Shown here one piece after another: positions 1 to 38,969 of a stretch of DNA of 64,000 bases. Positions within the stretch are counted from its first letter, which is position 1. Each line of letters starts with the position of its first letter. Source of the DNA: Mobula hypostoma (Eukaryota); NCBI RefSeq assembly GCF_963921235.1, contig NC_086099.1, forward strand, positions 1,984,001-2,048,000, read 5' to 3'. A model generated the notes under the pieces. It was not told where the DNA came from. It worked only from the letters and a program-made list of their open reading frames with translations, and did no database searches. The translations under genes and the position numbers were made by a program.

Positions 1-1200
1 AGAAGTAACCATTCCTGCCCCTGAGCCATCCAAATCTCTGTAATGGCCAAAACATCATATCTCCAAGTGCTGATCCACGCTCTAAGCTCATCCACTTTGT
101 TCATGATGCTTCTTGCGTTAAAACAGACACATCTCAAACCATTGGTCTGAGCGTGTCCCTTCTCTATCACCTACCTATCCTCCCTCTCGCACTACAAGCC
201 TTCTCTATTTGTGAGCCAATTGCCCATTCCTCTGTCTCTTCAATTCGGTTCCCAACCCCCAGCAATTCTAGTTTAAACTCTCCCCAATAGCCTTAGCAAA
301 TTCCCTGCCACGATATGGGTCCCCCTGGGATTCAAGTGCAACACAACCTTTTTGTACAGGTCACTCCTGCCCCAAAAGAGGTCCCAATGATCCAGAAATC
401 TGAATCCCTGTCCCCTGCTCCAATCCCTCAGCCACACATTTATCCTCCACCTCATTCTGTTTCTATTCTCACTGTCACGTGGCACAGGCAGTAATCCCGA
501 GATTACTACCTTTGTGATCCTGCTTCTCAACTTCCTTCCTAACTCCCTATATTCTCCTTTCAGGACCTCCTCCCTTTTCCTACCACGACCTCAGGCTGTT
601 CACCTGCACACCTCAGGAAATTGTGGACACAATCAGAAACATCCCAGACCCTGGAACCTGGGAGGCAAACTACCATCTGTGCTTCTTTCCTGCATCCAAA
701 GAATCGCCTGTCTGACCCTCTAACTATAGAGTCCCCTATCACTACTGGCATCCTGTTCCTTTCCCTACCCTTCTGAGCCACAGGGCCAGACTCTGTGCCA
801 GAGGCACGGCCACTGTTGCTTCCCCAGGTAGGCTGTCCCCCCCCCCCAACAGTACTCAAACAGGAGTACTTATTGTTCAGGGGTACAGCCACAGAGGTAC
901 TCTCTATTACCTGACTCTTCCCCTTCCCTCTACTGACTGTTACTCACTTGTCTGTCTCCTGCGGCCCCAGTGTGACCACCTGCCTATAACTCTCCTCTAT
1001 CACCTTCTCGCTCTCCCTGACCAGACAAAGGTCATCAAGCTGCATCTCCAGTTCCCTAACCTGGTCCCCAAGGAGCTGCAGCTCAACACACCTGGTACAG
1101 ATGTGGCCGTCCGGGAGGCTGGGAGTCTCCTGGGCATCCCACATCCGACACCCAGTACTGAACACACATACTTCCAATTCCTATTTTTCACAAGTAACTT
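1..1200 (-). mobile_element. CR1 LINE 5' part (decayed ORF1: Cys-rich finger and SGNH esterase-like domain)
   Basis: CRMW..HICTRCVELQLL, VVIGDSIVRGSDRRF, FLDHWDLFWGRSDLY motifs. Confidence 0.85.
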
Positions 1201-1842
1201 AGCTCACCTTGACCCATTATCGCCCAAGCCCCGTTGAGCCAAAGCCCTCCCACTCTGACGCCAGCTCTATAAAACTGTCTTCTTTTTGAACTCTTCCCGC
1301 CCGTCTAACTCACCGACATTCACGCACCTGCGCAGTCATGCCTTGATCAAACTGAAGAAAAAATGCTCTCCATTTAAATTCTTCCTGCTGGTCTAACTCG
1401 CTGACGTCCACACGCCTGCGCACTTCATGATTACTAATGTCACTGTTGCTGATGGTAATGATTCAGGCCAGTTATCGGTACTCTCTTGGGCATCAGAACG
1501 ATCCTGTCTGCCCTGAGCCTGCATGGACAATGGACTGTTTCAGAAAGATATTAAAGATGTCTGTTAGGACCTCTGCTAGCTGGGCTGCACAGTTCCTCAG
1601 CATCTGACCAGGTATGTTAACCAGCCGGATAGCTTTGTCTGAGTTTACTCCCGCTGGGATCCTCCTCACCTCAGCTGCAGCCACAGAGGGTGCCTATTCC
1701 TCAAGAAGAGAGGGGACGTTTCCTTGACGCCACATAATTCAAGTCATCAAATCGTGCACAGAAAGTATTCAGCCTATCAGGAAAAGAAACAATGTAGCGG
1801 CTAACCCAGAGAGTGGATTTACCATCAATTATGGTTAACATG

Positions 1843-2020
1843 GGCTGGCCGGTGATGTAGTGGCATTAGCACTGGACTTCGAGGCGGATGGCCCCAAGTT
1901 CAAGTCCAGCCAGGTCCCCAGTATCTGCATGGACGAAAGGCCTGGCGATCTACTTCCATATCCACACTATCATAGGGTAGCCATGAGTCGAAGACGACTC
2001 GACAGCAATCAATAACAACA
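1843..2020 (+). mobile_element. tRNA-derived SINE remnant with RTE-like 3' tail
   Basis: A-box-like GTAGTGG, B-box-like GTTCAAGTCC, tail GCCATGAGTCGAAGACGACTCGACAGC followed by AAC-rich end. Confidence 0.55.
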
Positions 2021-2039
2021 TAGTTTAATCATAGCCATA

Positions 2040-2445
2040 GTCATAATCATACTTTATTGATCCCGGGGGAAATTGGTTTTCGTTACAGTTGCACCATAAA
2101 TAAGTAAATAGTAATAAAACTATAAATAGTTAAATAGTAATATGTAAATTATGCCAGAAAATAAGTCCAGGACCAGCCTATTGGCTCAGGGTGTCCGACC
2201 CTCCAAGGGAGGAGTTGTAAAGTTTGATGGCCACAGGCAGGAATGACTTCCTATGACGCTCTGTGCTGCATCTCGGTGGAATGAGTCTCTGGCTGAATGT
2301 ACTCCTGTGCCCACCCAGTACATTATGTAGTGGATGGGAGACATTGTCCAAGATGGCATGCAACTTAGACAACATCCTCTTTTCAGACACCACCGTGAGA
2401 GAGTCCAGTTCCATCTCCACAACATCACTGGCCTTACGAATGAGG
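2040..2445 (-). mobile_element. Rex1/L2-type LINE 3' fragment
   Basis: ILDNVSHPLH..RKSFLPVAIKLYN C-terminal motif. Confidence 0.65.
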
Positions 2446-3154
2446 TAAGTTGAGTGGAAAAGCAAATTGTGCAGAAGGTATGGAGAGTCTGCAGAGAGAT
2501 ATAGATAGTTTAAGTGAGTGGGCAAGAGTCTGGCAGATGGAGTACAATGTTGGTAAATGTGAGGTCATCCACTTTGGAAGGGAAAATGAAAGAGCAGATC
2601 ATTATTTACAAGCAGCACGCTGCTGTGCAGAGGGACTTGGGAGTGCTTGTGCATGAATCACAAAAGGTTGGTTTGCAGGTGCAGCAGGCTATCAAGAAGG
2701 CAAATGGAATGTTGGCCTTCATCACTAGAGGGTTTGAATTTAATAACAGGGAGGTTATGCTGCAATTGTACAGTGCACTGGTGAGGCCGCACCTGGAGTA
2801 CTGCGTGCAGTTCTGGTCTCCTTACTTGAGGAAGGATATATTGGCTTTAGAGGTACACCAGGTTGATTCCAGGGATGAGGGGATTAGACTATGAGGAGAG
2901 ATTGAGTTGCCTGGGACTGTACTCCCTAGAATTCGGAAGAATGAGAGGAGATCTTATAGAAACATAAAATTATGAAAGGGATAGACAAGGTAGAGGCAGG
3001 AAAATTGTGGTACTGGTAGGTGAGACTAGAACTGGAGGACATAGCCTCCAGATTCAGGGGAGTGAAGAAAGCGAATGCGATGTTGGTATTCATTTCTAGA
3101 GGAATAGAGTGTAGGAGCAGGGATGTGATGTTGAGGCTCTTTAAGGCACTGGTA

Positions 3155-4110
3155 AGACTTGTCCCCTTGTCCTCACCTACCACCCCACCAGCCTCCGGAT
3201 CCAGCACATTATCCTCCGCAACTTCTGCCACCTTCAACAGGACCCCACCACTAAGCACATCTTTCCCTCTCCGCTTTCCGCGGGGATGGGTCCCTCCACG
3301 ACTCCCTGGTCCACACATCCCTCCCCACAGATCTCCCACCCAGCACTTATCCCTGTCAGCATTGGTGCTACACCTGTCCCTACACCACCTCTCTTGTCAT
3401 CATTCAGGGCCCCAAACAGTCCTTCCAGGTGAGGCAACACTTCACTTGTGAGTCTGTTGGGGTCATCTATTGCATCCGGTGCTCCCGGTGCGGCCTCCTC
3501 CACATCGGTGAAACCCGACACAGATTGGGGGACCGCTTCGTCAAGCACCTCCACTCCGTCCGCCACAACAGACAGGATCTCCCAGTAGCCACCCACTTCA
3601 ACTCTGCTTCCCACTCCCATTCAGATATGTCCATACATGGCCTCCTCTACTGTCATGATGAGGCTAAACTCAGGTTGGAGGTGCAACACCTCATATACCG
3701 TCTAGGTAGTCTCCAGCCCCTTGGTATGAATATAGAATTCTCCAACTTCCGGTAATTCCCTGCCCCTCCCTTCCTCTATCCCTATGTCACTCTGCCCCCT
3801 CCCTCAGCTGCCCATCACCTCCCTCATGGTTCCGCCTCCTTCTACTACCCATTGTGTTTTCCCCTATTCCTTCTTCACCTTTCCTGCCTATCACCTCCCT
3901 GCTTCCCCTCCCCCACCCCTTTATCTTTCCCCTTACTGGTTTTTCACCTGGAACCTACCAGCCTTCTCCTTCCCACCCTCCCCCCACCTTCTTTATAGGG
4001 CCTCTGCCCCCTCTCTCTATAGTCCTGACGAAGGGTTCCGGCCCAAAATGTCGACCGATCTTTTCCACGGATGCTGCCCGACCTGCTGAGTTCCTCCAGC
4101 GTGTTGTGAG
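3155..4110 (+). mobile_element. Penelope-like element fragment (GIY-YIG endonuclease) nested in CR1
   Basis: CESVGVIYCIRCSRCGLLHIGETRHRLGDRF..H; pyrimidine-rich tail and CTGACGAAGGG terminal motif. Confidence 0.85.
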
Positions 4111-4213
4111 TCCAACATCCTTGTAAATCTCCTCTGCACCCCTTCTATGGTTTCATGTCCCTCCTGTAGTGAGGCAACCAGAACTGAGTGCAGTACTCCA
4201 AGTGGGGTCTGAC

Positions 4214-5295
4214 CTATGTTTCTTCTAAGCTATGCACGCACACACACGTTTTTCAACCAGCGCACAAAGGAAATTAATGTGCGCACAAAAGGTTAGTTAC
4301 CTAAAATAATGTAATTAATAATTACACTTATTGAAAATAATCTTTTAGCTAACTGTTTCGGTTAACTAGTTAGTCAATTTTTCAAATACCACAATGCACG
4401 TCACTAATTTACGTCACCTCACCTTTCCTGTTCCAGTTTGTACAGCTGCATTCTGCGCGAGGCAAAATGAACAACATAAGAAAGCAGTATCTGTGAGACA
4501 ATGTTTCGTGGAGTGAAAAAGTTAAAAGTTTTGCTAAGCCAACAACGTGAAGAAAACATCACCGTAGATACAAGTTCGCTGTTGACTTTTATAAACAGTC
4601 TTTGTGTTCATTTAGAAGAAAGGCTTCCTGAAGATGAGGTTCAAGAATGGTCAGCTTTTGATTTCTCCACAATTGCAAATTGTGACTTCACATTTGGCGA
4701 TGAACAAGTTAATGCCTTATGTCTAAAATATCATGATTTTCTAGCTGAGAAATACTGTAATACTTAGACAGTTTAATGATTTCAAATTTTCCGTGCAAGA
4801 AAAAATTAAATCCAAACTGATTTCAAACTTTGCTCAAATGGTGGCATTTGTACTTCAAAATGAACAGTTTTGCGACCTTGCACAGTTGATGGACATTTGG
4901 GGAACCTTTCTTGCGTCTAGTGCAGACTGTGAGCGAGGTTTTAGCCTAATGAATCAACTCAAAAACAAGCTGAGAAACCATTTAGGTGAATATCATTTGG
5001 ATATGTTAATGAGAATCAGAAGCTATCAATTGGATGGAAGTTCTATTAGTCCAGACAGAGTTTACAAAGGATGGGTAAATGCCAAAGACAGGAGAGAGAA
5101 AAAATAACTGAGTGACTTAAATATGTATGTTATTTTGTTTGTTATTCTGTGCAGTTTTATGTCAAATATTTTGTAAATCTACATAAACTGTCCCATGTGT
5201 GCATTCAGTGCGCACATACTTTTGTCACAGGAAAAAAATTTGCACAACATAAGATTTTTGCGCACACTGACTACTAAAAATTAGAGGGAACGTTG
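4214..5295 (+). mobile_element. Internally deleted hAT DNA transposon inserted in a CR1 RT
   Basis: 8-bp TSD GGTCTGAC (4206-4213, 5296-5303); imperfect 15-bp TIRs; hATC-like SSADCERGFSLMNQLKNKLRN at 4793-5107. Confidence 0.88.
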
Positions 5296-5875
5296 GGTCT
5301 GACCAGGGTCCTATATAGCTGCAACATTACCTCTCGGCTCTTAAAGTCAATCCCATGACTGATTACGGCCAATGCACCGTATGCCTTCTTAACCACAGAG
5401 TCAACCTGCGTAGTAGCTGAGAGTGTCTTATGGACTTGGACCCCAAGATCCCTCTGATGCTCCACACTACCAAGAGTCTTACCATTAATAATATATTCTG
5501 CCATCATATTTGACCATACAAAATGAACCACCTCACACTTATCTGGGTTGAACTCCATCTGCCACTTCTCAGCCCAGTTTTGCATCCTATCAATATCCCG
5601 CTGTAACCTCTGACAGCCCTCCACACTATCCACAACACCCCCAACCTTTGTGTCATCAGCAAATTTACTAACCCATCCCTCCACTTCCTCATCCAGGTCA
5701 TTTATAAAAATCACAAAGAGTAAGGGTCCCAGAACAGATCCCTGAGGCACACCACTGGTCACCAACCTCCATACAGAATATGACACGTCTACAACCACTC
5801 TCTCCCTCCTGTGGGCAAGCCAGTTCTGGATCACAAAGCAATTTCCCCTTGGATCCCATGCCTCCTTACTTTGAA
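5296..5875 (-). mobile_element. CR1 RT fragment (continues at 4110-4213) in SRP72 intron 1
   Basis: [18 protein letters not shown] motifs. Confidence 0.9.
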
Positions 5876-5976
5876 GGCTCTACTTTCATCAATGGTGGAC
5901 AGAGTATGATGTGCACTTCGGCCCGCCGGCTGGGACATGTCACCACGGCCTCTCACCACCCACACCCGCCGCTTAC

Positions 5977-6073
5977 TTCTGTTCAGGGACTTCAGAGCCC
6001 GGCTGTAGTCCGCAGTCTGCCCGCAACGATTCACTTCGGTCCACAGCGCCGTTAGCGAGCTGCCACTCGCCAT
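5977..6073 (-). CDS. SRP72: SRP72 (signal recognition particle 72 kDa) coding exon 1; downstream exons not found in window
   Basis: GCC-ATG-G Kozak start; translates MASGSSLTALWTEVNRCGQTADYSRALKSLNR, matching the recalled vertebrate SRP72 N-terminus (..ALWSEVNRYGQNGDFTRALKTVNK); ends at phase-1 donor A|GTAAGC; CpG-rich context. Confidence 0.9.
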
Positions 6074-6160
6074 GGCCAAAGCAACACCAGCAACACCGGC
6101 AACCCCGGTCCTCTGTCAGGCCCAACTGCCCCGCACCGCCTGCGGACAGCACCACCACCG

Positions 6161-9100
6161 GCCACCGCCGCCGCCCGCGCCACCTGCCGGCCGGAGAGTC
6201 GACAGCCGCCGCCGCTAGCGCCACCTGCCGCCCGGAGAGTCGACAGCCGTCGCCGCCAGCGCCACCGGCCGCCCGGACAGTCGCCAGCCGCCGCCGCCGC
6301 CGCCCGTGCCACCTGCCGGCCGGAGAGTCGACAGCCGCCGCCGCCGCCGCCCGCGCCACCTGCCGGCCGTAGACTCGACAGCCGCAGCCGCCGCCCGCGC
6401 CACCTGCCGGCCGGAGAGTCGACAGCCGCCGCCGCCGCCGCCCGCGCCACCTGCCGGCCGTAGAGTCGACAGCCGCAGCCGCCGCCAGCGCCACCGGCCG
6501 CCCGGACAGTCGCCAGCCGCCGCCGCCGCCGCCGCCCGCGCCACCTGCCGGCCGGAGAGTCGACAGCCGTCGCCGCCAGCGCCACCTGCCGGCCGGAGAG
6601 TCGACAGCCGCCGCCGCCGCCGCCCGCGCCACCTGCCGGCCGTAGACTCGACAGCCGCAGCCGCCGCCCGCGCCACCTGCCGGCCGGAGAGTCGACAGCC
6701 GCCGCCGCCGCCGCCCGCGCCACCTGCCGGCCGTAGAGTCGACAGCCGCAGCCGCCGCCCGCGCCACCTGCCGGCCGGAGAGTCGACAGCCGCCGCCGCC
6801 GCCCGCGCCACCTGCCGGCCGGAGAGTCGCCAGCCGTCGCCGCCAGCGCCACCTGCCGGCCGGAGAGTCAACAGCCGCAGCCGCCGCCCGCGCCACCTGC
6901 CGCCCGGACAGTCGACAGCCGCCGCCGCCGCCGCCGCCCGCGCCACCTGCCGGCCGGAGAGTCGCCAGCCGTCGCCGCCAGCGCCACCTGCCGGCCGGAG
7001 AGTCGACAGCCGCCGCCGCCGCCGCCCGCGCCACCTGCCGGCCGTAGAGTCGACAGCCGCAGCCGCCGCCCGCGCCACCTGCCGGCCGGAGAGTCGCCGG
7101 CCGCCGCCGCCGCCGCCCGTGCCACCTGCCGGCCGGAGAGTCGACAGCCGCCGCCGCCGCCCGCGCCACCTGCCGGCCGGAGAGTCGCCAGCCGTCGCCG
7201 CCAGCGCCACCTGCCGGCCGGAGAGACGCCGGCCGCCGCCGCCCGCGCCACCTGCCGGCCGGAGAGTCCACAGCCGCCGCCGCCAGCGCCACCTGCCGGC
7301 CGGAGAGACGACAGCCGCCGCCGCTAGCGCCACCTGCCGCCCGGAGAGTCGACAACAGCCGACACCCGCGCCACCTGCCGGCCGGAGGGTCGCCAGCGCC
7401 ACCTGCCGGCCGGAGAGTCGACTGCCGCCGCCGCAGCCGCCCGCGCCACCTGCCGGCCGGAGGGTCGCCAGCCGCCGCCGCCAGCGCCACCTGCCGGCCG
7501 GAGAGTCAACAGCCGCAGCCGCCGCCCGCGCCACCTGCCGGCCGGAGAGTCGACAGCCGCCGCCGCCGCCGCCCGCGCCACCTGCCGGCCGTAGAGTCGA
7601 CAGCCGCAGCCGCCGCCCGCGCCACCTGCCGCCCGGACAGTCGACAGCCGCCGCCACCGCCGCCGCCCGCGCCACCTGCCGGCCGGAGGGTCGCCAGCCG
7701 CCGCCGCCAGCGCCACCTGCCGGCCGGAGAGTCAACAGCCGCAGCCGCCGCCCGCGCCACCTGCCGGCCGGAGAGTCGACAGCCGCCGCCGCCGCCGCCC
7801 GCGCCACCTGCCGGCCGTAGAGTCGACAGCCGCAGCCGCCGCCCGCGCCACCTGCCGGCCGGAGAGTCGACAGCCGCCGCCGCCGCCGCCCGCGCCACCT
7901 GCCGGCCGTAGAGTCGACAGCCGCAGCCGCCGCCCGCGCCACCTGCCGCCCGGACAGTCGACAGCCGCCGCCGCCGCCGCCGCCCGCGCCACCTGCCGGC
8001 CGGAGAGTCGCCAGCCGTCGCCGCCAGCGCCACCTGCCGGCCGGAGAGTCGACAGCCGCCGCCGCCGCCGCCCGCGCCACCTGCCGGCCGTAGAGTCGAC
8101 AGCCGCAGCCGCCGCCCGCGCCACCTGCCGGCCGGAGAGTCGCCGGCCGCCGCCGCCGCCGCCCGTGCCACCTGCCGGCCGGAGAGTCGACAGCCGCCGC
8201 CGCCGCCCGCGCCACCTGCCGGCCGGAGAGTCGCCAGCCGACGCCGCCAGCGCCACCTGCCGGCCGGAGAGTCGACAGCCGCCGCCGCCGCCGCCCGCGC
8301 CACCTGCCGGCCGTAGAGTCGACAGCCGCAGCCGCCGCCCGCGCCACCTGCCGGCCGGAGAGTCGCCGGCCGCCGCCGCCGCCGCCCGTGCCACCTGCCG
8401 GCCGGAGAGTCGACAGCCGCCGCCGCCGCCCGCGCCACCTGCCGGCCGGAGAGTCGCCAGCCGTCGCCGCCAGCGCCACCTGCCGGCCGGAGAGACGCCG
8501 GCCGCCGCCGCCCGCGCCACCTGCCGGCCGGAGAGTCCACAGCCGCCGCCGCCAGCGCCACCTGCCGGCCGGAGAGACGACAGCCGCCGCCGCTAGCGCC
8601 ACCTGCCGCCCGGAGAGTCGACAACAGCCGACACCCGCGCCACCTGCCGGCCGGAGGGTCGCCAGCCGCCGCCGCCAGCGCCACCTGCCGGCCGGAGAGT
8701 CAACAGCCGCAGCCGCCGCCCGCGCCACCTGCCGGCCGGAGAGTCGACAGCCGCCGCCGCCGCCGCCCGCGCCACCTGCCGGCCGTAGAGTCGACAGCCG
8801 CAGCCGCCGCCCGCGCCACCTGCCGCCCGGACAGTCGACAGCCGCCGCCACCGCCGCCGCCCGCGCCACCTGCCGGCCGGAGGGTCGCCAGCCGCCGCCG
8901 CCAGCGCCACCTGCCGGCCGGAGAGTCAACAGCCGCAGCCGCCGCCCGCGCCACCTGCCGGCCGGAGAGTCGACAGCCGCCGCCGCCGCCGCCCGCGCCA
9001 CCTGCCGGCCGTAGAGTCGACAGCCGCAGCCGCCGCCCGCGCCACCTGCCGGCCGGAGAGTCGACAGCCGCCGCCGCCGCCGCCCGCGCCACCTGCCGGC

Positions 9101-12100
9101 CGTAGAGTCGACAGCCGCAGCCGCCTCCCGCGCCACCTGCCGCCCGGACAGTCGACAGCCGCCGCCGCCGCCGCCGCCCGCGCCACCTGCCGGCCGGAGA
9201 GTCGCCAGCCGTCGCCGCCAGCGCCACCTGCCGGCCGGAGAGTCGACAGCCGCCGCCGCCGCCGCCGCCCGCGCCACCTGCCGGCCGGAGGGTCGCCAGC
9301 CGCCGCCGCCAGCGCCACCTGCCGGCCGGAGAGTCAACAGCCGCAGCCGCCGCCCGCGCCACCTGCCGGCCGGAGAGTCGACAGCCGCCGCCGCCGCCGC
9401 CCGCGCCACCTGCCGGCCGTAGAGTCGACAGCCGCAGCCGCCGCCCGCGCCACCTGCCGGCCGGAGAGTCGACAGCCGCCGCCGCCGCCGCCCGCGCCAC
9501 CTGCCGGCCGTAGAGTCGACAGCCGCAGCCGCCGCCCGCGCCACCTGCCGCCCGGACAGTCGACAGCCGCCGCCGCCGCCGCCGCCCGCGCCACCTGCCG
9601 GCCGGAGAGTCGCCAGCCGTCGCCGCCAGCGCCACCTGCCGGCCGGAGAGTCGACAGCCGCCGCCGCCGCCGCCCGCGCCACCTGCCGGCCGTAGAGTCG
9701 ACAGCCGCAGCCGCCGCCCGCGCCACCTGCCGGCCGGAGAGTCGCCGGCCGCCGCCGCCGCCGCCCGTGCCACCTGCCGGCCGGAGAGTCGACAGCCGCC
9801 GCCGCCGCCCGCGCCACCTGCCGGCCGGAGAGTCGCCAGCCGTCGCCGCCAGCGCCACCTGCCGGCCGGAGAGACGCCGGCCGCCGCCGCCCGCGCCACC
9901 TGCCGGCCGGAGAGTCCACAGCCGCCGCCGCCAGCGCCACCTGCCGGCCGGAGAGACGACAGCCGCCGCCGCTAGCGCCACCTGCCGCCCGGAGAGTCGA
10001 CAACAGCCGACACCCGCGCCACCTGCCGGCCGGAGGGTCGCCAGCCGCCGCCGCCAGCGCCACCTGCCGGCCGGAGAGTCGACAGCCGCAGCCGCCGCCC
10101 GCGCCACCTGCCGGCCGGAGAGTCGACAGCCGCCGCCGCCGCCGCCCGCGCCACCTGCCGGCCGGAGAGTCGACAGCCGCAGCCGCCGCCCGCGCCACCT
10201 GCCGCCCGGACAGTCGACAGCCGCCGCCACCGCCGCCGCCCGCGCCACCTGCCGGCCGGAGAGTCGACAGCCGCAGCCGCCGCCCGCGCCACCTGCCGGC
10301 CGGAGAGTCGACAGCCGCCGCCGCCGCCGCCCGCGCCACCTGCCGGCCGTAGAGTCGACAGCCGCAGCCGCCGCCCGCGCCACCTGCCGGCCGGAGAGTC
10401 GCCGGCCGCCGCCGCCGCCGCCCGTGCCACCTGCCGGCCGGAGAGTCGACAGCCGCCGCCGCCGCCCGCGCCACCTGCCGGCCGGAGAGTCGCCAGCCGT
10501 CGCCGCCAGCGCCACCTGCCGGCCGGAGAGTCAACAGCCGCAGCCGCCGCCCGCGCCACCTGCCGGCCGGAGAGTCGACAGCCGCCGCCGCCGCCGCCCG
10601 CGCCACCTGCCGGCCGTAGAGTCGACAGCCGCAGCCGCCGCCCGCGCCACCTGCCGCCCGGACAGTCGACAGCCGCCGCCGCCGCCGCCGCCCGCGCCAC
10701 CTGCCGGCCGGAGAGTCGCCAGCCGTCGCCGCCAGCGCCACCTGCCGGCCGGAGAGTCGACAGCCGCCGCCGCCACCGCCCGCGCCACCTGCCGGCCGGA
10801 GAGACGCCGGCCGCCGCCGCCCGCGCCACCTGCCGGCCGGAGAGTCCACAGCCGCCGCCGCCAGCGCTACCTGCCGGCCGGAGAGACGACAGCCGCCGCC
10901 GCTAGCGCCACCTGCCGCCCGGAGAGTCGACAACAGCCGACACCCGCGCCACCTGCCGGCCGGAGAGTCGCCAGCCGTCGCCGCCAGCGCCACCTGCCGG
11001 CCGGAGAGTCGACAGCCGCCGCCGCCACCGCCCGCGCCACCTGCCGGCCGGAGAGACGCCGGCCGCCGCCGCCCGCGCCACCTGCCGGCCGGAGAGTCCA
11101 CAGCCGCCGCCGCCAGCGCCACCTGCCGGCCGGAGAGACGACAGCCGCCGCCGCTAGCGCCACCTGCCGCCCGGAGAGTCGACAACAGCCGACACCCGCG
11201 CCACCTGCCGGCCGGAGAGACGCCGGCCGCCGCCCCGTGCCACCTGCCGGCCGGAGAGTCGACAGCCGCCGCCGCCGCCGCCCGCGCCACCTGCCGGCCG
11301 GAGAGTCGACAGCCGCCGCCGCTAGCGCCACCTGCCGCCCGGAGAGTCGACAGCCGTCGCCGCCAGCGCCACCGGCCGCCCGGACAGTCGCCAGCCGCCG
11401 CCGCCGCCGCCCGTGCCACCTGCCGGCCGGAGAGTCGACAGCCGCCGCCGCCGCCGCCCGCGCCACCTGCCGGCCGTAGACTCGACAGCCGCAGCCGCCG
11501 CCCGCGCCACCTGCCGGCCGGAGAGTCGACAGCCGCCGCCGCCGCCGCCCGCGCCACCTGCCGGCCGTAGAGTCGACAGCCGCAGCCGCCGCCCGCGCCA
11601 CCTGCCGCCCGGACAGTCGACAGCCGCCGCCGCCGCCGCCGCCCGCGCCACCTGCCGGCCGGAGAGTCGCCAGCCGTCGCCGCCAGCGCCACCTGCCGGC
11701 CGGAGAGTCGACAGCCGCCGCCGCCGCCGCCCGCGCCACCTGCCGGCCGTAGACTCGACAGCCGCAGCCGCCGCCCGCGCCACCTGCCGGCCGGAGAGTC
11801 GACAGCCGCCGCCGCCGCCGCCCGCGCCACCTGCCGGCCGTAGAGTCGACAGCCGCAGCCGCCGCCCGCGCCACCTGCCGGCCGGAGAGTCGACAGCCGC
11901 CGCCGCCGCCCGCGCCACCTGCCGGCCGGAGAGTCGCCAGCCGTCGCCGCCAGCGCCACCTGCCGGCCGGAGAGTCAACAGCCGCAGCCGCCGCCCGCGC
12001 CACCTGCCGCCCGGACAGTCGACAGCCGCCGCCGCCGCCGCCGCCCGCGCCACCTGCCGGCCGGAGAGTCGCCAGCCGTCGCCGCCAGCGCCACCTGCCG

Positions 12101-15100
12101 GCCGGAGAGTCGACAGCCGCCGCCGCCGCCGCCCGCGCCACCTGCCGGCCGTAGAGTCGACAGCCGCAGCCGCCGCCCGCGCCACCTGCCGGCCGGAGAG
12201 TCGCCGGCCGCCGCCGCCGCCGCCCGTGCCACCTGCCGGCCGGAGAGTCGACAGCCGCCGCCGCCGCCCGCGCCACCTGCCGGCCGGAGAGTCGCCAGCC
12301 GTCGCCGCCAGCGCCACCTGCCGGCCGGAGAGACGCCGGCCGCCGCCGCCCGCGCCACCTGCCGGCCGGAGAGTCCACAGCCGCCGCCGCCAGCGCCACC
12401 TGCCGGCCGGAGAGACGACAGCCGCCGCCGCTAGCGCCACCTGCCGCCCGGAGAGTCGACAACAGCCGACACCCGCGCCACCTGCCGGCCGGAGGGTCGC
12501 CAGCGCCACCTGCCGGCCGGAGAGTCGACTGCCGCCGCCGCAGCCGCCCGCGCCACCTGCCGGCCGGAGGGTCGCCAGCCGCCGCCGCCAGCGCCACCTG
12601 CCGGCCGGAGAGTCAACAGCCGCAGCCGCCGCCCGCGCCACCTGCCGGCCGGAGAGTCGACAGCCGCCGCCGCCGCCGCCCGCGCCACCTGCCGGCCGTA
12701 GAGTCGACAGCCGCAGCCGCCGCCCGCGCCACCTGCCGCCCGGACAGTCGACAGCCGCCGCCACCGCCGCCGCCCGCGCCACCTGCCGGCCGGAGGGTCG
12801 CCAGCCGCCGCCGCCAGCGCCACCTGCCGGCCGGAGAGTCAACAGCCGCAGCCGCCGCCCGCGCCACCTGCCGGCCGGAGAGTCGACAGCCGCCGCCGCC
12901 GCCGCCCGCGCCACCTGCCGGCCGTAGAGTCGACAGCCGCAGCCGCCGCCCGCGCCACCTGCCGGCCGGAGAGTCGACAGCCGCCGCCGCCGCCGCCCGC
13001 GCCACCTGCCGGCCGTAGAGTCGACAGCCGCAGCCGCCGCCCGCGCCACCTGCCGCCCGGACAGTCGACAGCCGCCGCCGCCGCCGCCGCCCGCGCCACC
13101 TGCCGGCCGGAGAGTCGCCAGCCGTCGCCGCCAGCGCCACCTGCCGGCCGGAGAGTCAACAGCCGCAGCCGCCGCCGCCCGCGCCACCTGCCGGCCGTAG
13201 AGTCGACAGCCGCAGCCGCCGCCCGCGCCACCTGCCGGCCGGAGAGTCGACAGCCGCCGCCGCCGCCGCCCGCGCCACCTGCCGGCCGTAGAGTCGACAG
13301 CCGCAGCCGCCGCCCGCGCCACCTGCCGCCCGGACAGTCGACAGCCGCCGCCGCCGCCGCCGCCCGCGCCACCTGCCGGCCGGAGAGTCGCCAGCCGTCG
13401 CCGCCAGCGCCACCTGCCGGCCGGAGAGTCGACAGCCGCCGCCGCCGCCGCCCGCGCCACCTGCCGGCCGTAGAGTCGACAGCCGCAGCCGCCGCCCGCG
13501 CCACCTGCCGCCCGGACAGTCGACAGCCGCCGCCGCCGCCGCCGCCCGCGCCACCTGCCGGCCGGAGAGTCGCCAGCCGGCGCCGCCAGCGCCACCTGCC
13601 GGCCGGAGAGACGCCGGCCGCCGCCGCCCGCGCCACCTGCCGGCCGGAGAGTCCACAGCCGCCGCCGCCAGCGCCACCTGCCGGCCGGAGAGACGACAGC
13701 CGCCGCCGCTAGCGCCACCTGCCGCCCGGAGAGTCGACAACAGCCGACACCCGCGCCACCTGCCGGCCGGAGGGTCGCCAGCGCCACCTGCCGGCCGGAG
13801 AGTCGACTGCCGCCGCCGCAGCCGCCCGCGCCACCTGCCGGCCGGAGGGTCGCCAGCCGCCGCCGCCAGCGCCACCTGCCGGCCGGAGAGTCAACAGCCG
13901 CAGCCGCCGCCCGCGCCACCTGCCGGCCGGAGAGTCGACAGCCGCCGCCGCCGCCGCCCGCGCCACCTGCCGGCCGTAGAGTCGACAGCCGCAGCCGCCG
14001 CCCGCGCCACCTGCCGCCCGGACAGTCGACAGCCGCCGCCACCGCCGCCGCCCGCGCCACCTGCCGGCCGGAGAGTCGACAGCCGCAGCCGCCGCCCGCG
14101 CCACCTGCCGGCCGGAGAGTCGACAGCCGCCGCCGCCGCCGCCCGCGCCACCTGCCGGCCGTAGAGTCGACAGCCGCAGCCGCCGCCCGCGCCACCTGCC
14201 GGCCGGAGAGTCGCCGGCCGCCGCCGCCGCCGCCCGTGCCACCTGCCGGCCGGAGAGTCGACAGCCGCCGCCGCCGCCCGCGCCACCTGCCGGCCGGAGA
14301 GTCGCCAGCCGTCGCCGCCAGCGCCACCTGCCGGCCGGAGAGTCAACAGCCGCAGCCGCCGCCCGCGCCACCTGCCGGCCGGAGAGTCGACAGCCGCCGC
14401 CGCCGCCGCCCGCGCCACCTGCCGGCCGTAGAGTCGACAGCCGCAGCCGCCGCCCGCGCCACCTGCCGCCCGGACAGTCGACAGCCGCCGCCGCCGCCGC
14501 CGCCCGCGCCACCTGCCGGCCGGAGAGTCGCCAGCCGTCGCCGCCAGCGCCACCTGCCGGCCGGAGAGTCGACAGCCGCCGCCGCCACCGCCCGCGCCAC
14601 CTGCCGGCCGGAGAGACGCCGGCCGCCGCCGCCCGCGCCACCTGCCGGCCGGAGAGTCCACAGCCGCCGCCGCCAGCGCTACCTGCCGGCCGGAGAGACG
14701 ACAGCCGCCGCCGCTAGCGCCACCTGCCGCCCGGAGAGTCGACAACAGCCGACACCCGCGCCACCTGCCGGCCGGAGAGTCGCCAGCCGGCGCCGCCAGC
14801 GCCACCTGCCGGCCGGAGAGTCGACAGCCGCCGCCGCCACCGCCCGCGCCACCTGCCGGCCGGAGAGACGCCGGCCGCCGCCGCCCGCGCCACCTGCCGG
14901 CCGGAGAGTCCACAGCCGCCGCCGCCAGCGCCACCTGCCGGCCGGAGAGACGACAGCCGCCGCCGCTAGCGCCACCTGCCGCCCGGAGAGTCGACAACAG
15001 CCGACACCCGCGCCACCTGCCGGCCGGAGGGTCGCCAGCGCCACCTGCCGGCCGGAGAGTCGACTGCCGCCGCCGAGCCGCCCGCGCCACCTGCCGGCCG

Positions 15101-15684
15101 GAGAGTCGACAGCCGCCGCCGCCGCCGCCCGCGCCACCTGCCGGCCGGAGAGTCGACAGCCGTCGCCGCCAGCGCCACCTGCCGGCCGGAGAGTCGACAG
15201 CCGCCGCCGCCACCGCCCGCGCCACCTGCCGGCCGGAGAGACGCCGGCCGCCGCCCCGTGCCACCTGCCGGCCGGAGAGTCGACAGCCGCCGCCGCCGCC
15301 GCCCGCGCCACCTGCCGGCCGTAGAGTCGACAGCCGCAGCCGCCGCCCGCGCCACCTGCCGGCCGGAGAGACGCCGGCCGCCGCCCCGTGCCACCTGCCG
15401 GCCGGAGAGTCGACAGCCGCCGCCGCCGCCGCCCGCGCCACCTGCCGGCCGTAGAGTCGACAGCCGCAGCCGCCGCCCGCGCCACCTGCCGCCCGGACAG
15501 TCGCCAGCCGCCGCCGCCGCCCGCGCCACCTGCCGGCCGGAGAGTCCACAGCCGCCGCCGCCAGCGCCACCTGCCGGCCGGACAGTCGCCAGCCGCCGCC
15601 GCCGCCCGCGCCACCTGCCGTCGGAGGGTCGACAGCCGCCGCCGCCCGCGCCACCTGCCGGCCGGAGAGTCGCCAGCCGCAGCC
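6161..15684. repeat. ~9.5 kb GC/CpG-rich minisatellite, ~40-46 bp units (GCCACCTGCCGGCCGGAGAGTCGACAG + (CCG)n), roughly 220 copies, with higher-order duplications
   Basis: Tandem array seen directly; identical ORF blocks recur at offsets of 5107, 3812 and 1194 bp. Confidence 0.97.
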
Positions 15685-16729
15685 TTCAACATCCCGTCCT
15701 TTCTCCTGCACCCGATACGGTACTTTGTTTTATAAAGGCCAATGTGCCAAAACTTTTCTTTACTACCTGTGCTGCCACATTTAAGGAATTATGGACCTGA
15801 TCCTCTGTTGTACCACCCTGCTCAGTCTACCTGACTGAGTGCAACACCTCCCGCCTGTCTGTTCAATTCCATCCGCCATTCTCCAGCAGATCCCTCTGCC
15901 AGCCGGAGCCTTCTCGCTGTCCGCTGCACCCACAATCTTGCTGTCATCCTCAAATTTGCTGAGTCAGAATCAGGCTCATTATCACCGGCATGTGACGTGA
16001 AATTAAATTATCTGGTAGTAATGCTGTTTCATTTGGCTGTCTGTACAGTATTCACATACGGTTGAATGACAATGAAGCTTCTGCTTGTTTATCATCCAGA
16101 TCATTGATCCAGGTGACAACAGAGCCAACACCAATCCATACGGCGCTCCACTAGTCACCAGCCTCCAGACAGGCAGCCGCCGACTACCTTTCTCGAAGGC
16201 ACAAATTGGCCGGAGATGTGCAAGCCCATGTGAGAGGAGGAAGCTTTCTTATTGAAAAGCTTCCCAAAGCATTTCACATCCTTTTAAGTATTAATTCTGC
16301 AGAATGTAGTTGTCACTGACCAGACCAACATTTTTCATTAGTTGCCCCTGAGAAGATGGCAGTGTGCCCCCATCTTGACTCACTGTATTCTTTGTTATGA
16401 AAGTAAATGAGGTATCTATCTATCACTGAAACATACTCCCGCACAACCGAACAATGCGCTGGGTGCGGCCCACAAGCATGCAGTGCCAACACGTATGCTC
16501 ACAGTACAACGAATCCTACCGTGAGTTGCTACCATTCTTTAACTTTCTTTACAAATGTACACATTAAGGTAGGAATTTTAGTAGGTCATGTTAAGGTGGA
16601 ATAATGCCTGTACTGTAATACTCCCTTTAATTTTTAATGTCATCGCTAGACCTCTTCACAATTATGCAGCAGAGAACCAGTGCTCGTGCTCAACCTGTCC
16701 AAGCTGACTGTGTCAGAACACAGATCATC

Positions 16730-18228
16730 ATCACAGGCCCTTCAGCCCACAAAACGGTGCTGACCATGTAACCTACTCTGGAAACTACCTAGAATTTCCC
16801 TACCACACCGCCCTCTATTTTTCTAAGCTCCACGTACCTATCTAAGGGTCTCTTAAAAGATCCTATCGTATCCACCTCCACCATTGTCACTGGCAGCCCA
16901 TTCCACACACTCACCACTCTCTGAGTAAAAAACTTACCCCTGATATCCCCCCTGTACCTACTTCCAAGCACATTAAAACTGTGCCCTCTCGTGTTAGCCA
17001 TTTCAGCCCCGGGAAAAAGCCTCTGACAACCCACACAATCAATGCCTCTCATCATCTTATACACCTCTATCAGGTCACCTCTCATCCTCTGTCACTCCAA
17101 GGAGAAAAGGCCGAGTTCACTCAACCTATTCTCATAAGGCATGCTCCCCAATCGAGACAAAATCCTTGTAAATCTCCTCTGCACCCTTTCTGTGGTTTCC
17201 ACATCCCTCCTGTAGCGAGGCAACCAGAACTGAGCACAGTACTCCAAGTGGGGTCTGACCAAGATCTGATATAGCTCTAACATTACCTCACGGCTCTTAA
17301 ACCGAGTCCCACGGTTGATGAATGCCAACACATCGTAAGCCTTCTTAACAACACTGTCAACCTGCACAGTAGCTTTGAGTGTCCAGTGGACATGGACCCC
17401 AAGATCCCTCTGATCCTGTTTTGCCTACCTGAGACAGTCCTAGTGACCTGTGTTTGGTTCATTTATTTCTAAAGTATTCAAATATGATGGCAGAATTTAG
17501 TATTAATGGTAAGACTCTTGGCAGTGTGGAGGATCAGAGGGATCATGGGGTCCGAGTCCATAGGACAATGAAACTTGCTGTGCAGGTTGACTCTGTGGTT
17601 AAGAAGGCATATGGTGCATTGGCCTTCATCAATCATGGGATTGAGTTTAGGAGCCGAGAGGTAATGTTGCAGCTATATAAGACCCTGGTCAGACCCCACT
17701 TGGAGTACTGTACTCAGTTCTGGTCACCTCACTACAGGAAAGAATGTGGAAACCATAGAAAGGGTGCAGAGGAGATTTACAAGGATGTTGCCTGGATTGG
17801 GGAGCATACCTTATGAGAATAGGTTGAGTGGACTCGACCTTTTCTCCTTGAAGCAACGGAGGATGAGAGGTGACCTGATAGAGGTGTATAAGATGATGAG
17901 AGGCATTGATCATGTGGATAGTCAGAGGCTTTTTCCCAGGGATGAAATGGTTGCCACAAGAGGGCACAGGTTTAAGGTGCTGGGGAGTAGGTACAGAGAA
18001 GATGTCAGGGGTAAGTTTTTTACTCAGAGAGTGGTGACTGCGTGGAATGGGCTGCCGGCAATGGTGATGGAGGTGGGTCTTTTAAGAGACTTTTGGACAG
18101 GTACATGGAGCTTAGTAAAATAGAGGGCTATGGGTAAGCCTAGTAATTTCTAAGGTAGGGACATGTTCGGCCCAACTTTGTGGACCGAAGGGCCTGTATT
18201 GTGCTGTAGTTTTTCTATGTTTCTATGT
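16730..18228. mobile_element. Two CR1 3' fragments in opposite orientation (minus ~16730-17417, plus ~17476-18228)
   Basis: LVRPHLEYC, MRGDLIEVYK motifs; TTCTATG tail. Confidence 0.88.
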
Positions 18229-18589: not shown

Positions 18590-21500
18590 GGTGAGTGTAG
18601 AATGAGTGAGTGTACAGTGAGTGAGTGTACAGGTAGAGTGAGTGTACAGTGAGTGAGTGTACAGGTAGAGTGAGTGTACAGTGAGTGAGTGTACAGTGAG
18701 TGAGTGTACAGGTAGAGTGAGTGTACAGTGAGTGAGTGTACAGTGAGTGAGTGTACAGTGAGTGAGTGTACAGGTAGAGTGAGTGTACAGTGAGTGAGTG
18801 TACAGTGAGTGAGTGTACAGGTAGAGTGAGTGTACAGTGAGTGAGTGTACAGGTAGAGTGAGTGTACAGTGAGTGAGTGTACAGGTAGAGTGAGTGTACA
18901 GTGAGTGAGTGTACAGGTAGAGTGAGTGTACAGGTAGAGTGAGTGTACAGTGAGTGAGTGTACAGGTAGAGTGAGTGTACAGTGAGTGAGTGTACAGGTA
19001 GAGTGAGTGTACAGGTAGAGTGAGTGTACAATGAGTGAGTGTACAGTGAGTGAGTGTACAGTGAGTGAGTGTACAGGTGGAGTGAGTGTACAATGAGTGA
19101 GTGTACAGTGAGTGAGTGTACAATGAGTGAGTGTACAGGTAGAGTGAGTGTACAGTGAGTGAGTGTACAGGTAGAGTGAGTGTACAGGTAGAGTGAGTGT
19201 ACAGTGAGTGAGTGTACAGGTAGAGTGAGTGTACAGGTAGAGTGAGTGTACAGTGAGTGAGTGTACAGTGAGTGAGTGTACAGGTAGAGTGAGTGTACAA
19301 TGAGTGAGTGTACAGTGAGTGAGTGTACAGGTGGAGTGAGTGTACAGGTGGAGTGAGTGTACAGTGAGTGAGTGTACAGGTGGAGTGAGTGTACAGTTAG
19401 AGTGAGTGTACAGGTAGAGTGAGTGTACAGTGAGTGAGTGTACAGGTAGAGTGAGTGTACAGTGAGTGAGTGTACAGTGAGTGAGTGTACAGGTAGAGTG
19501 AGTGTACAGTGAGTGAGTGTACAGGTAGAGTGAGTGTACAGGTAGAGTGAGTGTACAATGAGTGAGTGTACAGTGAGTGAGTGTACAGTGAGTGAGTGTA
19601 CAGGTGGAGTGAGTGTACAATGAGTGAGTGTACAGTGAGTGAGTGTACAATGAGTGAGTGTACAGGTAGAGTGAGTGTACAGTGAGTGAGTGTACAGTGA
19701 GTGAGTGTACAGGTAGAGTGAGTGTACAGTGAGTGAGTGTACAGTGAGTGAGTGTACAGGTAGAGTGAGTGTACAGTGAGTGAGTGTACAGTGAGTGAGT
19801 GTACAGGTAGAGTGAGTGTACAATGAGTGAGTGTACAGTGAGTGAGTGTACAGGTGGAGTGAGTGTACAGGTAGAGTGAGTGTACAGTGAGTGAGTGTAC
19901 AGGTGGAGTGAGTGTACAGTTAGAGTGAGTGTACAGGTAGAGTGAGTGTACAGTGAGTGAGTGTACAGGTAGAGTGAGTGTACAATGAGTGAGTGTACAG
20001 TGAGTGAGTGTACAGGTAGAGTGAGTGTACAGTGAGTGAGTGTACAGGTAGAGTGAGTGTACAGGTGGAGTGAGTGTACAGGTAGAGTGAGTGTACAGTG
20101 AGTGAGTGTACAGGTAGAGTGAGTGTACAGTGAGTGAGTGTACAGTGAGTGAGTGTACAAGTAGAGTGAGTGTACAGTGAGTGAGTGTACAGGTAGAGTG
20201 AGTGTACAGTGAGTGAGTGTACAGGTAGAGTGAGTGTACAGGTAGAGTGAGTGTACAGTGAGTGAGTGTACAGGTAGAGTGAGTGTACAGTGAGTGAGTG
20301 TACAGGTAGAGTGAGTGTACAGGTAGAGTGAGTGTACAATGAGTGAGTGTACAGTGAGTGAGTGTACAGGTGGAGTGAGTGTACAATGAGTGAGTGTACA
20401 GTGAGTGAGTGTACAATGAGTGAGTGTACAGGTAGAGTGAGTGTACAGTGAGTGAGTGTACAGGTAGAGTGAGTGTACAGGTAGAGTGAGTGTACAGTGA
20501 GTGAGTGTACAGGTAGAGTGAGTGTACAGGTAGAGTGAGTGTACAGTGAGTGAGTGTACAGTGAGTGAGTGTACAGGTAGAGTGAGTGTACAGGTAGAGT
20601 GAGTGTACAATGAGTGAGTGTACAGTGAGTGAGTGTACAGGTGGAGTGAGTGTACAATGAGTGAGTGTACAGTGAGTGAGTGTACAGGTGGAGTGAGTGT
20701 ACAGGTAGAGTGAGTGTACAGTGAGTGAGTGTACAGGTAGAGTGAGTGTACAGGTAGAGTGAGTGTACAGTGAGTGAGTGTACAGGTAGAGTGAGTGTAC
20801 AGGTAGAGTGAGTGTACAGGTAGAGTGAGTGTACAGTGAGTGAGTGTACAGGTAGAGTGAGTGTACAGGTAGAGTGAGTGTACAATGAGTGAGTGTACAG
20901 TGAGTGAGTGTACAGGTGGAGTGAGTGTACAGGTAGAGTGAGTGTACAGTGAGTGAGTGTACAGGTAGAGTGAGTGTACAATGAGTGAGTGTACAGTGAG
21001 TGAGTGTACAGGTAGAGTGAGTGTACAGTGAGTGAGTGTACAGGTAGAGTGAGTGTACAGGTGGAGTGAGTGTACAGGTAGAGTGAGTGTACAGTGAGTG
21101 AGTGTACAGGTAGAGTGAGTGTACAGTGAGTGAGTGTACAGTGAGTGAGTGTACAAGTAGAGTGAGTGTACAATGAGTGAGTGTACAGTGAGTGAGTGTA
21201 CAGGTAGAGTGAGTGTACAGGTAGAGTGAGTGTACAGTGAGTGAGTGTACAGGTAGAGTGAGTGTACAGTGAGTGAGTGTACAGGTAGTGAGTGTACAGG
21301 TAGAGTGAGTGTACAGGTAGAGTGAGTGTACAGGTAGAGTGAGTGTACAGTGAGTGAGTGTACAGGTAGAGTGAGTGTACAGTGAGTGAGTGTACAGGTA
21401 GAGTGAGTGTACAGGTAGAGTGAGTGTACAGTGAGTGAGTGTACAGGTAGAGTGAGTGTACAGGTGGAGTGAGTGTACAATGAGTGAGTGTACAGTGAGT

Positions 21501-22308
21501 GAGTGTACAATGAGTGAGTGTACAGGTAGAGTGAGTGTACAGTGAGTGAGTGTACAGGTAGAGTGAGTGTACAGGTAGAGTGAGTGTACAGTGAGTGAGT
21601 GTACAGGTAGAGTGAGTGTACAGGTAGAGTGAGTGTACAGTGAGTGAGTGTACAGTGAGTGAGTGTACAGGTAGAGTGAGTGTACAGGTAGAGTGAGTGT
21701 ACAATGAGTGAGTGTACAGTGAGTGAGTGTACAGGTGGAGTGAGTGTACAGGTAGAGTGAGTGTACAGTGAGTGAGTGTACAGGTGGAGTGAGTGTACAG
21801 TTAGAGTGAGTGTACAGGTAGAGTGAGTGTACAGTGAGTGAGTGTACAGGTAGAGTGAGTGTACAATGAGTGAGTGTACAGTGAGTGAGTGTACAGGTAG
21901 AGTGAGTGTACAGTGAGTGAGTGTACAGGTAGAGTGAGTGTACAGGTGGAGTGAGTGTACAGGTAGAGTGAGTGTACAGTGAGTGAGTGTACAGTGAGTG
22001 AGTGTACAAGTAGAGTGAGTGTACAATGAGTGAGTGTACAGTGAGTGAGTGTACAGGTAGAGTGAGTGTACAGGTAGAGTGAGTGTACAGTGAGTGAGTG
22101 TACAGGTGGAGTGAGTGTACAGTGAGTGAGTGTACAGGTAGAGTGAGTGTACAGGTAGAGTGAGTGTACAGTGAGTGAGTGTACAGGTGGAGTGAGTGTA
22201 CAGTGAGTGAGTGTACAATGAGTGAGTGTACAGTGAGTGAGTGTACAGGTGGAGTGAGTGTACAGGTGGAGTGAGTGTACAGTGAGTGAGTGTACAGGTA
22301 GAGTGAGT
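18590..22308. repeat. Minisatellite of interspersed 15-bp (GTACAGTGAGTGAGT) and 17-bp (GTACAGGTAGAGTGAGT) units
   Basis: Seen directly; about 230 units. Confidence 0.97.
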
Positions 22309-22879
22309 GGGTATGAAAATGGGTACGGTAAAGAAATGGTTAACAAGTAGGAATGTATGCTGTTAGGCAGATTGACCCTTCATACTAAGTAAGGCCCCTG
22401 GTATACCCGATGACATGCATGAAAACAAAGCTGATTTGCGTTAAAGCAATCAATTACCTTGTCTCTGGAGATGTTTTCTATATTGTTTGATTGTAAGTTA
22501 ATAGGATGCATTGACCCTGGGGAGGCAGAGGCCGACTGTTGTGGGACGTGCAGTGTAAAGGACATATGTTGGCCTGATACGTGACCAGGGCTTGGAAGTG
22601 GCCCAAGATGAGGTCGTGTAGGTGTCGGATTGGATGTCTAGCCCCTTCCAGCTGGACTGGGAGGGGGTGATAGGGCTATGAAGGTGGGCAAGTTCTTTCC
22701 TGGGCAGACCACTCGCCTGGGTCCCAGCTTTGGGCCGAGCAGCTGAACTGGCCAGTCCACGGTCGATCGCCTGCCTCAGGGACCATGCAGACGTTGCTAA
22801 GTATACTTGGCGGTGTAGACTACCAGGGGCTGTTTAAGTTAGCCCTACCTATTAGTGGTGCAGGTAGTGTACAATATAA

Positions 22880-32840: not shown

Positions 32841-33200
32841 GTAACCTGCTGACAGAGGTCCCTTACGAGCCTCCAGAGAGAGAGGGACACTGTCCCTCTG
32901 GTAACCTGCTGGCAGAGGTCCCTCACGAGCCTCCAGAGAGAGAGGGACACTGTCCCTCTGGTAACCTGCTGGCAGAGGTCCCTCACGAGCCTCCAGAGAG
33001 AGAGGGACACTGTCCCTCTGGTAACCTGCTGGCAGAGGTCCCTCACGAGCCTCCAGAGAGAGAGGGACACTGTCCCTCTGGTAACCTGCTGGCAGAGGTC
33101 CCTCACGAGCCTCCAGAGAGAGAGGGACACTGTCCCTCTGGTAACCTGCTGACAGAGGTCCCTCACGAGCCTCCAGAGAGAGAGGGACACTGTCCCTCTG
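32841..33200. repeat. 60-bp tandem repeat, 6 copies
   Basis: GTAACCTGCTGGCAGAGGTCCCTCACGAGCCTCCAGAGAGAGAGGGACACTGTCCCTCTG x6. Confidence 0.97.
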
Positions 33201-38790: not shown

Positions 38791-38969
38791 AGACGGCGCT
38801 CCGAAGGCTCGGGCAGTCAGTCGGACCGTGTCGGGCGCGGGCAGATTTCCATCGCCAGCGACGCGCCCGCACTTGGGCGCAGTTGGATGACGTAGGAGTA
38901 GCCGGTGCCGATCCGGATCGGTTGCTGAGGCCGGTGGAGAGCGGATTCGGATTCTGCTCCGGCCCCGGG

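Follow-up and report, generated by a model that had tools for sequence, protein, structure and literature searches.

Upstream of the SRP72 gene of the devil ray Mobula hypostoma lies a long array of GC-rich tandem repeats whose units resemble binding sites for CTCF. This raises the question of whether the units are elements of the SRP72 promoter, a loop anchor, or simply a repeat with a fortuitous likeness to a CTCF site. We addressed this in a stretch of 64,000 nucleotides (NC_086099.1, positions 1,984,001 to 2,048,000, hereafter the window, with positions counted from its first letter). A previous reading, made from the sequence only, had proposed that co-oriented CTCF-like motifs here could form an anchor or insulator of about 200 sites. 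We favor a different emphasis, to which we assign a probability of roughly 0.55. The array is read as a hyper-expanded promoter minisatellite that itself constitutes the SRP72 CpG island, and its repeating unit as a putative module of a forward CTCF-type site and a GC box. The coordinates of the features are collected in Table 1.

Tandem Repeats Finder reports one single array with a period of 41–44 bp and 217 copies. We split the array into units by anchoring on the core GCCACCTGCCG, allowing at most one mismatch, which yielded 217 units of 36 sequence types. Unit lengths differ in steps of whole GCC triplets, with 74 units of 41 bp, 61 of 44 bp, 54 of 47 bp and 18 of 50 bp. The array spans 9,524 bp at 82% G+C, and its head-to-tail units fall within the 10–100 bp range of minisatellites. 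All 213 matches to the 26-base unit core in the window lie within the array and on a single strand, where none would be expected by chance. Read in the sense direction of SRP72, a unit consists of a CTCF-type 19-mer, then a GC box and then a (GGC)n run; the GC box, GGGCGG, occurs in 156 units and is missing from 61. Per unit there are also the palindromes GTCGAC and CCGGCCGG, the latter with two HpaII sites. Thus, the earlier description of a co-oriented array of about 9.5 kb just upstream of the SRP72 start was accurate. Its starting position of 6074, given as about 90 bp from the ATG, is however the base immediately upstream of the ATG, and the array itself begins 87 bp away. Similarly, the E-box CACCTG, which had been attributed to each unit, is present in 212 of the 217.

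A coding repeat was ruled out, since unit lengths of 41, 44, 47 and 50 bp all leave 2 modulo 3 and no ATG occurs on either strand across the 9.5 kb. The long open reading frames (ORFs) in the array are the stop-poor frames expected at 82% G+C. No canonical G-quadruplex was found on either strand of the array, only two-tetrad patterns.

We scored the units with the JASPAR matrix MA0139.1 (consensus TGGCCACCAGGGGGCGCTA), which was used at a threshold of 8 in a study of the little skate (PMC10115646). On the minus strand, which is the sense strand of SRP72, 214 units reach at least 12 bits, above the usual thresholds, 194 reach at least 15 bits and 183 at least 17 bits, with matrix-score p-values of 6e-7 to 1.4e-5 on a uniform background. 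No site on the plus strand of the array reaches 10 bits. The array therefore has a predicted site per unit in a single orientation: at 12 bits, 214 of the 217 units have one on the minus strand, and the plus strand has 0. Two forms of the 19-mer predominate, CGGCCGGCAGGTGGCGCGG in 126 units (17.7 bits; 17.66) and CGGCCGGCAGGTGGCGCTG in 45 units (20.1 bits; 20.08), and the remainder are close variants. These forms bear out the core that the sequence-only reading had described on the minus strand. They also agree with its observation that the best variants differ from the consensus only by G for A at position 6, which is the sole core departure in the best form and corresponds to core position 3. 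The further claim that all units are CTCF-like in one orientation stands as to orientation, while the strength of at least 12 bits extends to 214 units and not to all 217.

A comparison with shuffled controls, which had been suggested for these units, supports the match. A score of 17.66 bits was reached by 3 of 20,000 dinucleotide shuffles and 3 of 20,000 mononucleotide shuffles of the units, and 20.08 bits by none. The ray figures alone are not a discovery p-value, because the 217 copies are multiples of a single event and the array was singled out for its likeness to a CTCF site. As a second control we scored ten other minisatellites from the ray window and the SRP72 locus of the elephant shark Callorhinchus milii. 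These span 39–85% G+C, including G-rich examples of 73–85%, and score at most 8.2 bits, versus 20.1 and 16.2 bits for the SRP72 arrays of the two species.

Variation between the units indicates where in the repeat change is least common. The core columns GCCACCTGCCG, matrix positions 5–15, contain 5 minor alleles in two columns over the 217 units, whereas the next eleven columns (GAGAGTCGACA) all vary and contain 209 minor alleles. Of the 19 columns of the 19-mer 7 are variable, as against 11 of the 11 beside it (Fisher p = 6e-4). The segmentation is unbiased for variability, in that the anchor occurs in each unit with no more than one mismatch and none of the units is left at double length. 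Within the unit, variation is lowest in the core.

The array has a CpG observed/expected ratio of 1.15 over 1,789 CpGs, compared with 0.67–0.71 for the adjoining 87 bp and exon 1 and 0.33–0.35 for both flanks. It thus exceeds the values that define a CpG island (more than 200 bp, G+C above 50%, observed/expected above 0.6) at 9,524 bp, 0.82 and 1.15. The array together with the 87-bp stretch is the sole CpG island at the SRP72 5′ end in the window, because the sequence past the distal end is CpG-poor and unrelated to the unit. In the commonest unit 20 of 47 bases sit in CpGs, and 9 of 54 differences between unit types are changes from CpG to TpG or CpA. There is no sign of methylation-driven decay, which might be explained either by a hypomethylated germ line or by a very recent expansion. 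In CTCF sites, those of H19 among them, a purine follows core cytosines 2 and 12, forming CpG or CpA, and binding is strongly impaired when cytosine 2 is methylated (PMC10484683, PMC6222495). In the ray core both cytosines lie within CpGs, that at cytosine 2 being created by the G at matrix position 6, so the predicted sites would be of the methylation-sensitive kind.

The gene itself was identified from its first exon. The 33-residue exon-1 peptide matches residues 7–36 of human SRP72 chains with E = 3.8e-7 (phmmer, PDB chains) and matches SRP72 N-termini across vertebrates. The 87-bp stretch that separates the ATG from the array has a GC fraction of 0.69 and a CpG observed/expected ratio of 0.67, and the core of its decayed unit, CTGTCCGCAGGCGGTGCGG, scores 1.7 bits. 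Neither the array nor this stretch contains a sense-strand ATG, so a transcript begun further upstream would still meet the SRP72 start codon first. We considered an origin of the unit from the exon-1 coding stretch (GGCGCTGTGG, Ala-Leu-Trp), and rejected it for the ray since 174 of 500 shuffles align as well; for the Callorhinchus unit the case is weak, with a marginal 6 of 500.

Table 1 Features of the SRP72 5′ region in the ray window and of the corresponding repeat in Callorhinchus.
Feature	Position	Strand	Basis or remark
Minisatellite, 217 units of 41/44/47/50 bp	6161..15684	minus	Tandem Repeats Finder and core-anchored segmentation
Higher-order example, run of 33 units	6581..8030 (end approximate)	minus	Recurs with matching unit types from 11688, offset 5107 bp
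SRP72 exon 1, coding part, 33 codons; ATG 6073-6071, GT donor just past 5975	5975..6073	minus	ORF frame and phmmer
87-bp stretch between ATG and array, presumed 5′ untranslated region (UTR) and core promoter, decayed unit at distal end	6074..6160	minus	Partial alignment to unit
CTCF-type 19-mer closest to SRP72	6175..6193	minus	3′ end 102 bp from ATG
Distal flank, CpG-poor (observed/expected about 0.3-0.5), no unit similarity	15685..16200		Sequence comparison
19.3-bit CTCF-matrix match in dispersed repeat, divergent to array	17951..17969	plus	Matrix scan
Callorhinchus minisatellite, 29-bp period, about ten copies, GC-rich	L007 9668-9963		Ends about 40 bp before SRP72 ATG (10001)

We compared the ray with one other cartilaginous fish, Callorhinchus, which was reached from the exon-1 peptide through representative and homologue searches. 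Apart from Callorhinchus, the species listed by the protein searches were ray-finned fishes and birds only; a word-index search with the ray exon-1 ORF returned nothing and an exact look-up gave no further contig. The Callorhinchus SRP72 promoter also contains a minisatellite, in which seven 16.2-bit matches (TGGGCTGTAGGGGGCGCTG) are spread over −324 to −70 relative to the ATG, each in the sense orientation. There are no further matches of at least 10 bits in positions 1–13000 of locus L007, and 1–2 of 20,000 shuffled Callorhinchus units reach 16.2 bits. The array has 12 GC boxes and no E-box in the form of CAGGTG or CACCTG. In both species the motif strand is the SRP72 sense strand, and the nearest site, as measured from the ATG and not from the transcription start, ends 102 bp away in the ray and starts 70 bp upstream in Callorhinchus. 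The two cores differ at matrix positions 1, 4, 6, 8 and 12, and at positions 1, 8 and 12 the bases of both species are favored by the matrix. A shared 13-mer, CAGGTGGCGCTGG, is within chance for the composition by our estimate. In common the two arrays have their position and tandem form, together with a CTCF-type core in sense orientation and a GC box. Because a version of about ten units stands at the corresponding place in Callorhinchus, the CTCF-type site is probably a real promoter element that has expanded, with binding predicted. The sequence-only reading had suggested looking for a single-copy version in the SRP72 promoters of related species, and none was found, the Callorhinchus version being tandem and seven bony-vertebrate promoters being without a site. 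That interpretation was upheld in part, for the strong co-oriented matrix matches, the core of low variability and the sense-oriented sites in Callorhinchus, and was not supported as to a single-copy ancestor.

What such a site would do at SRP72 is suggested by work in mammals. In mouse cells, a forward CTCF site immediately upstream of the start site works as an activator of housekeeping genes without dependence on cohesin (PMC12695661), and co-orientation with transcription arose in jawed vertebrates, according to a comparative preprint (bioRxiv 10.64898/2026.10.19.760054). Srp72 is absent from those supplementary files of PMC12695661 that were searched. By analogy, this simpler known role as a housekeeping-promoter activator would fit where the copies nearest the gene lie and how they are oriented. 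These copies may be read as a promoter-proximal CTCF and Sp1 module because the nearest site ends close to the ATG, which would be apt given a short 5′ leader. The mammalian matrix and mechanism apply to batoids, since TAD (topologically associating domain) boundaries in the little skate carry oriented MA0139.1 motifs with the bias expected from loop extrusion (PMC10115646).

We propose that each unit, read with transcription, would act as a promoter module composed of the CTCF-type core (CCGGCAGGTGGCGC), an Sp1-type GC box and a short (GGC)n run, to which CTCF would bind while the unit is unmethylated. The eleven fingers of CTCF span about 33–35 bp (PMC10484683), so that one CTCF per unit of 41–50 bp is sterically possible. 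Those units that lie closest to SRP72, from about 100 bp upstream of the ATG onward, would behave like mammalian forward promoter-proximal activator sites. The array would have grown by slippage and unequal exchange of multi-unit blocks, staying hypomethylated in the germ line, and the remaining 9 kb would represent repeat expansion that retained the properties of an island. Since the N-terminal fingers of CTCF sit at the motif's 3′ end (PMC10484683), cohesin that reaches an occupied array from the gene side would be stalled. Many occupied units could thereby present a strong one-sided barrier to cohesin from the SRP72 side, which we see as a by-product of the expansion and not as the reason for the site. 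That the array as a whole might act as a loop anchor or insulator is plausible.

Several observations weigh against our favored reading. The counts of the scoring matrix were entered by hand and not taken from the JASPAR file, with column totals that are self-consistent and run smoothly from 913 to 908. Within the 19-mer, column variability shows no correlation with matrix information (rho = −0.12), and the high-information position 4 is G in 32 units, which lowers these to 12.5 bits. Homology between the ray and Callorhinchus units was not found, as 69 of 300 shuffled units align as well, with the cores in register in the best local alignment; common descent of the two arrays is not demonstrated because the unit similarity is not above that of shuffles. 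The SRP72 promoters of seven bony vertebrates (bowfin, beluga sturgeon, emu and four vertebrate contigs), scanned from −1 kb to +0.2 kb on either strand, contain nothing above 8.7 bits. The CTCF-type site is therefore not a general SRP72 feature, occurring in the sense orientation upstream of the gene in 2 of 2 cartilaginous fishes and in 0 of 7 bony-vertebrate promoters, whose islands are only a few hundred bases long. Finally, long GC-rich arrays are often silenced, and silencing would abolish CTCF binding here because both sensitive core cytosines are in CpGs.

The alternative that survives best is that the expansion was itself selected, as a directional loop anchor or insulator of roughly 200 sites that organizes the SRP72 domain as an autosomal counterpart of DXZ4. 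It draws on the 214 co-oriented sites, one per 44 bp, and on CpGs that are intact across the whole 9.5 kb and so beyond the part near the gene. A strong divergent site also stands 2.3 kb past the distal end, an arrangement noted at insulation minima in the skate (PMC10115646). Copy number is not conserved, however, as Callorhinchus has about 7 sites, and no convergent partner was found in the 6 kb of the gene that lie inside the window. The manner of growth is also informative. The order of unit types is complex and non-periodic, with exact recurrence of multi-unit blocks, and because 33 consecutive identical units recur at an offset of 5,107 bp this indicates growth through block duplication. 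Such identical blocks suggest recent and probably neutral growth, and expansion appears to be a local habit, with tandem repeats making up 34% of the window. We therefore consider selection for an anchor unlikely. A combined version is similarly doubtful, in which an old, maintained tandem CTCF module of cartilaginous fishes, present in chimaera and ray, grew in the devil ray to the densest CTCF-site array described (one per 44 bp over 9.5 kb), unmethylated and occupied, to serve as both a promoter and an autosomal one-sided cohesin super-anchor.

Alternatively, the array may be a neutral GC-rich repeat of variable copy number, with an incidental CTCF likeness, bound by nothing or by another factor and perhaps methylated or heterochromatic except near the gene. 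Minisatellites are abundant in the window, the ray p-value is biased by a finding chosen for its likeness, and homology with the Callorhinchus unit is not demonstrable. The invariant GGCAGGTGG also resembles classic G-rich minisatellite cores. Set against these points are the independent Callorhinchus array with a like site in like orientation and the ten control arrays that lack a CTCF-type site. A core far less variable than the neighboring columns, the lack of excess CpG decay, and the position of the array as the only SRP72 CpG island here likewise count against neutrality. On balance, a purely neutral repeat is unlikely.

It is very unlikely that the core serves a different factor with no involvement of CTCF, whether an E-box binder of the E-protein, ZEB or Snail type at CAGGTG, Sp1/KLF acting on the GC box, or a motif that promotes recombination. 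CACCTG is found in 212 units and the GC box in 156, and the Callorhinchus array has GC boxes as well. The Callorhinchus units nevertheless have no E-box, so we rejected it as the conserved element and regard it as probably incidental to the CTCF-type core. The invariant block of 11 bases is also wider than a 6-base E-box. The GC box lies outside this block and is missing in 61 units, and a role for Sp1 is in any case compatible with the promoter module that we favor and forms part of it. An assembly artefact, in which the assembler over-expanded a short promoter repeat, might account for the identical 33-unit blocks but can be set aside as hardly credible given the 36 unit types in complex, non-periodic order, unique junctions at both flanks and a window with no runs of N.

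Further repeats surround the array. Copies of the dispersed repeat that carries the divergent site have matches at the corresponding place, at 17951–17969 (plus strand, 19.3 bits), 43446–43464 (plus, 14.9 bits) and 16979–16997 (minus, 13.1 bits). The flanks of these three matches align at 85% mean column identity, and this looks like a transposon family that could be spreading CTCF-type sites in the ray genome. Six further tandem arrays lie at 18591–22309, 32841–33203, 37186–39507, 44006–44800, 55703–59245 and 62250–64000, and together with the SRP72 array they form the roughly 34% of the window given above. None of the six resembles the CTCF matrix, with at most 7 bits; the 17/49-bp array at 18591–22309 has zero CpG, and that at 62250–64000 continues past the end of the window. 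SRP72 intron 1 (window 1–5900) consists largely of transposon remains, with an RVT_1 reverse transcriptase (E = 1e-14) and weak, sub-threshold matches to GIY-YIG (Penelope-type) and hAT dimerisation domains.

In Callorhinchus, SRP72 exon 1 is flanked by further minisatellites, a 22-bp CA-rich repeat upstream (L007 8694–9660) and G-rich repeats in intron 1 (10153–10687). In both lineages the SRP72 5′ end is prone to repeats. On the same strand as SRP72 and about 8 kb upstream of it, L007 1–1904 holds a gene fragment with an SRP72-type TPR domain, which may have arisen by partial duplication in tandem or as a duplication in the assembly. In bowfin, sturgeon, Callorhinchus and emu (L004, L005, L007 and L008), the gene that comes after SRP72 on the same strand is of the Arf family (ARL9-like), and in the sturgeon record P0012 SRP72 and the ARL9-like gene are fused in one predicted protein.

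If the units bind CTCF, the locus is a natural experiment in which one promoter-proximal site has been multiplied 217-fold at an essential gene. It would then be possible to test whether a CpG island made only of repeat can stay unmethylated and active, how many neighboring sites can be occupied at a spacing of 41–50 bp, and whether barrier strength in loop extrusion scales with site number. The parallel Callorhinchus array suggests that promoter CTCF sites can persist in, or re-arise within, unstable repeats over hundreds of millions of years. Should the units not bind CTCF, the array is a very large GC-rich promoter minisatellite and a caution that G-rich repeat cores can mimic the CTCF matrix.

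A literature search on SRP72 together with CTCF found nothing relevant, and we compared the array with other repeats and CTCF sites. The INS variable-number tandem repeat (VNTR), the CSTB dodecamer and the FMR1 CGG repeat (in the 5′ UTR) are slippage-prone GC-rich repeats upstream of genes or in their leaders, with length-dependent effects on expression, and none among them is known to have a CTCF core per unit. When the CGG or dodecamer repeats expand greatly their genes are silenced, an outcome that SRP72, being essential, could not tolerate. The DXZ4 macrosatellite has units of about 3 kb with one site each and is not a gene promoter, whereas the ray array, autosomal to the extent that this can be judged, has sites packed about 70 times more densely. 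DXZ4 differs also in being CTCF-bound on the inactive X only (PMC3491370). The likeness to DXZ4/Dxz4 and Firre lies in tandem co-oriented CTCF sites, whose orientation directs long-range contacts there (bioRxiv 10.1101/165340; PMC3491370). With the forward promoter-proximal CTCF sites of housekeeping genes the ray array shares a motif co-oriented with transcription just upstream of a broadly needed gene, but these sites are single or few and in the ray the site is 217-fold. The closest case is mouse DXPas34, with a length of roughly 1–2 kb, far shorter than the 9.5 kb and 217 units of the ray. It is described in PMC3149622, which cites Chao et al. 2002, as a CpG-rich minisatellite by the Tsix major promoter, with monomers of 30–34 bp that each have a CTCF site. 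DXPas34 is rodent-specific and belongs to a non-coding antisense gene in X-inactivation, and CTCF binding was shown there whereas it is predicted from sequence in the ray. The ray array thus joins a known kind of tandem CTCF-site array, and is unusual in how large and dense it is, in forming the island of an essential housekeeping gene and in having a chimaera counterpart.

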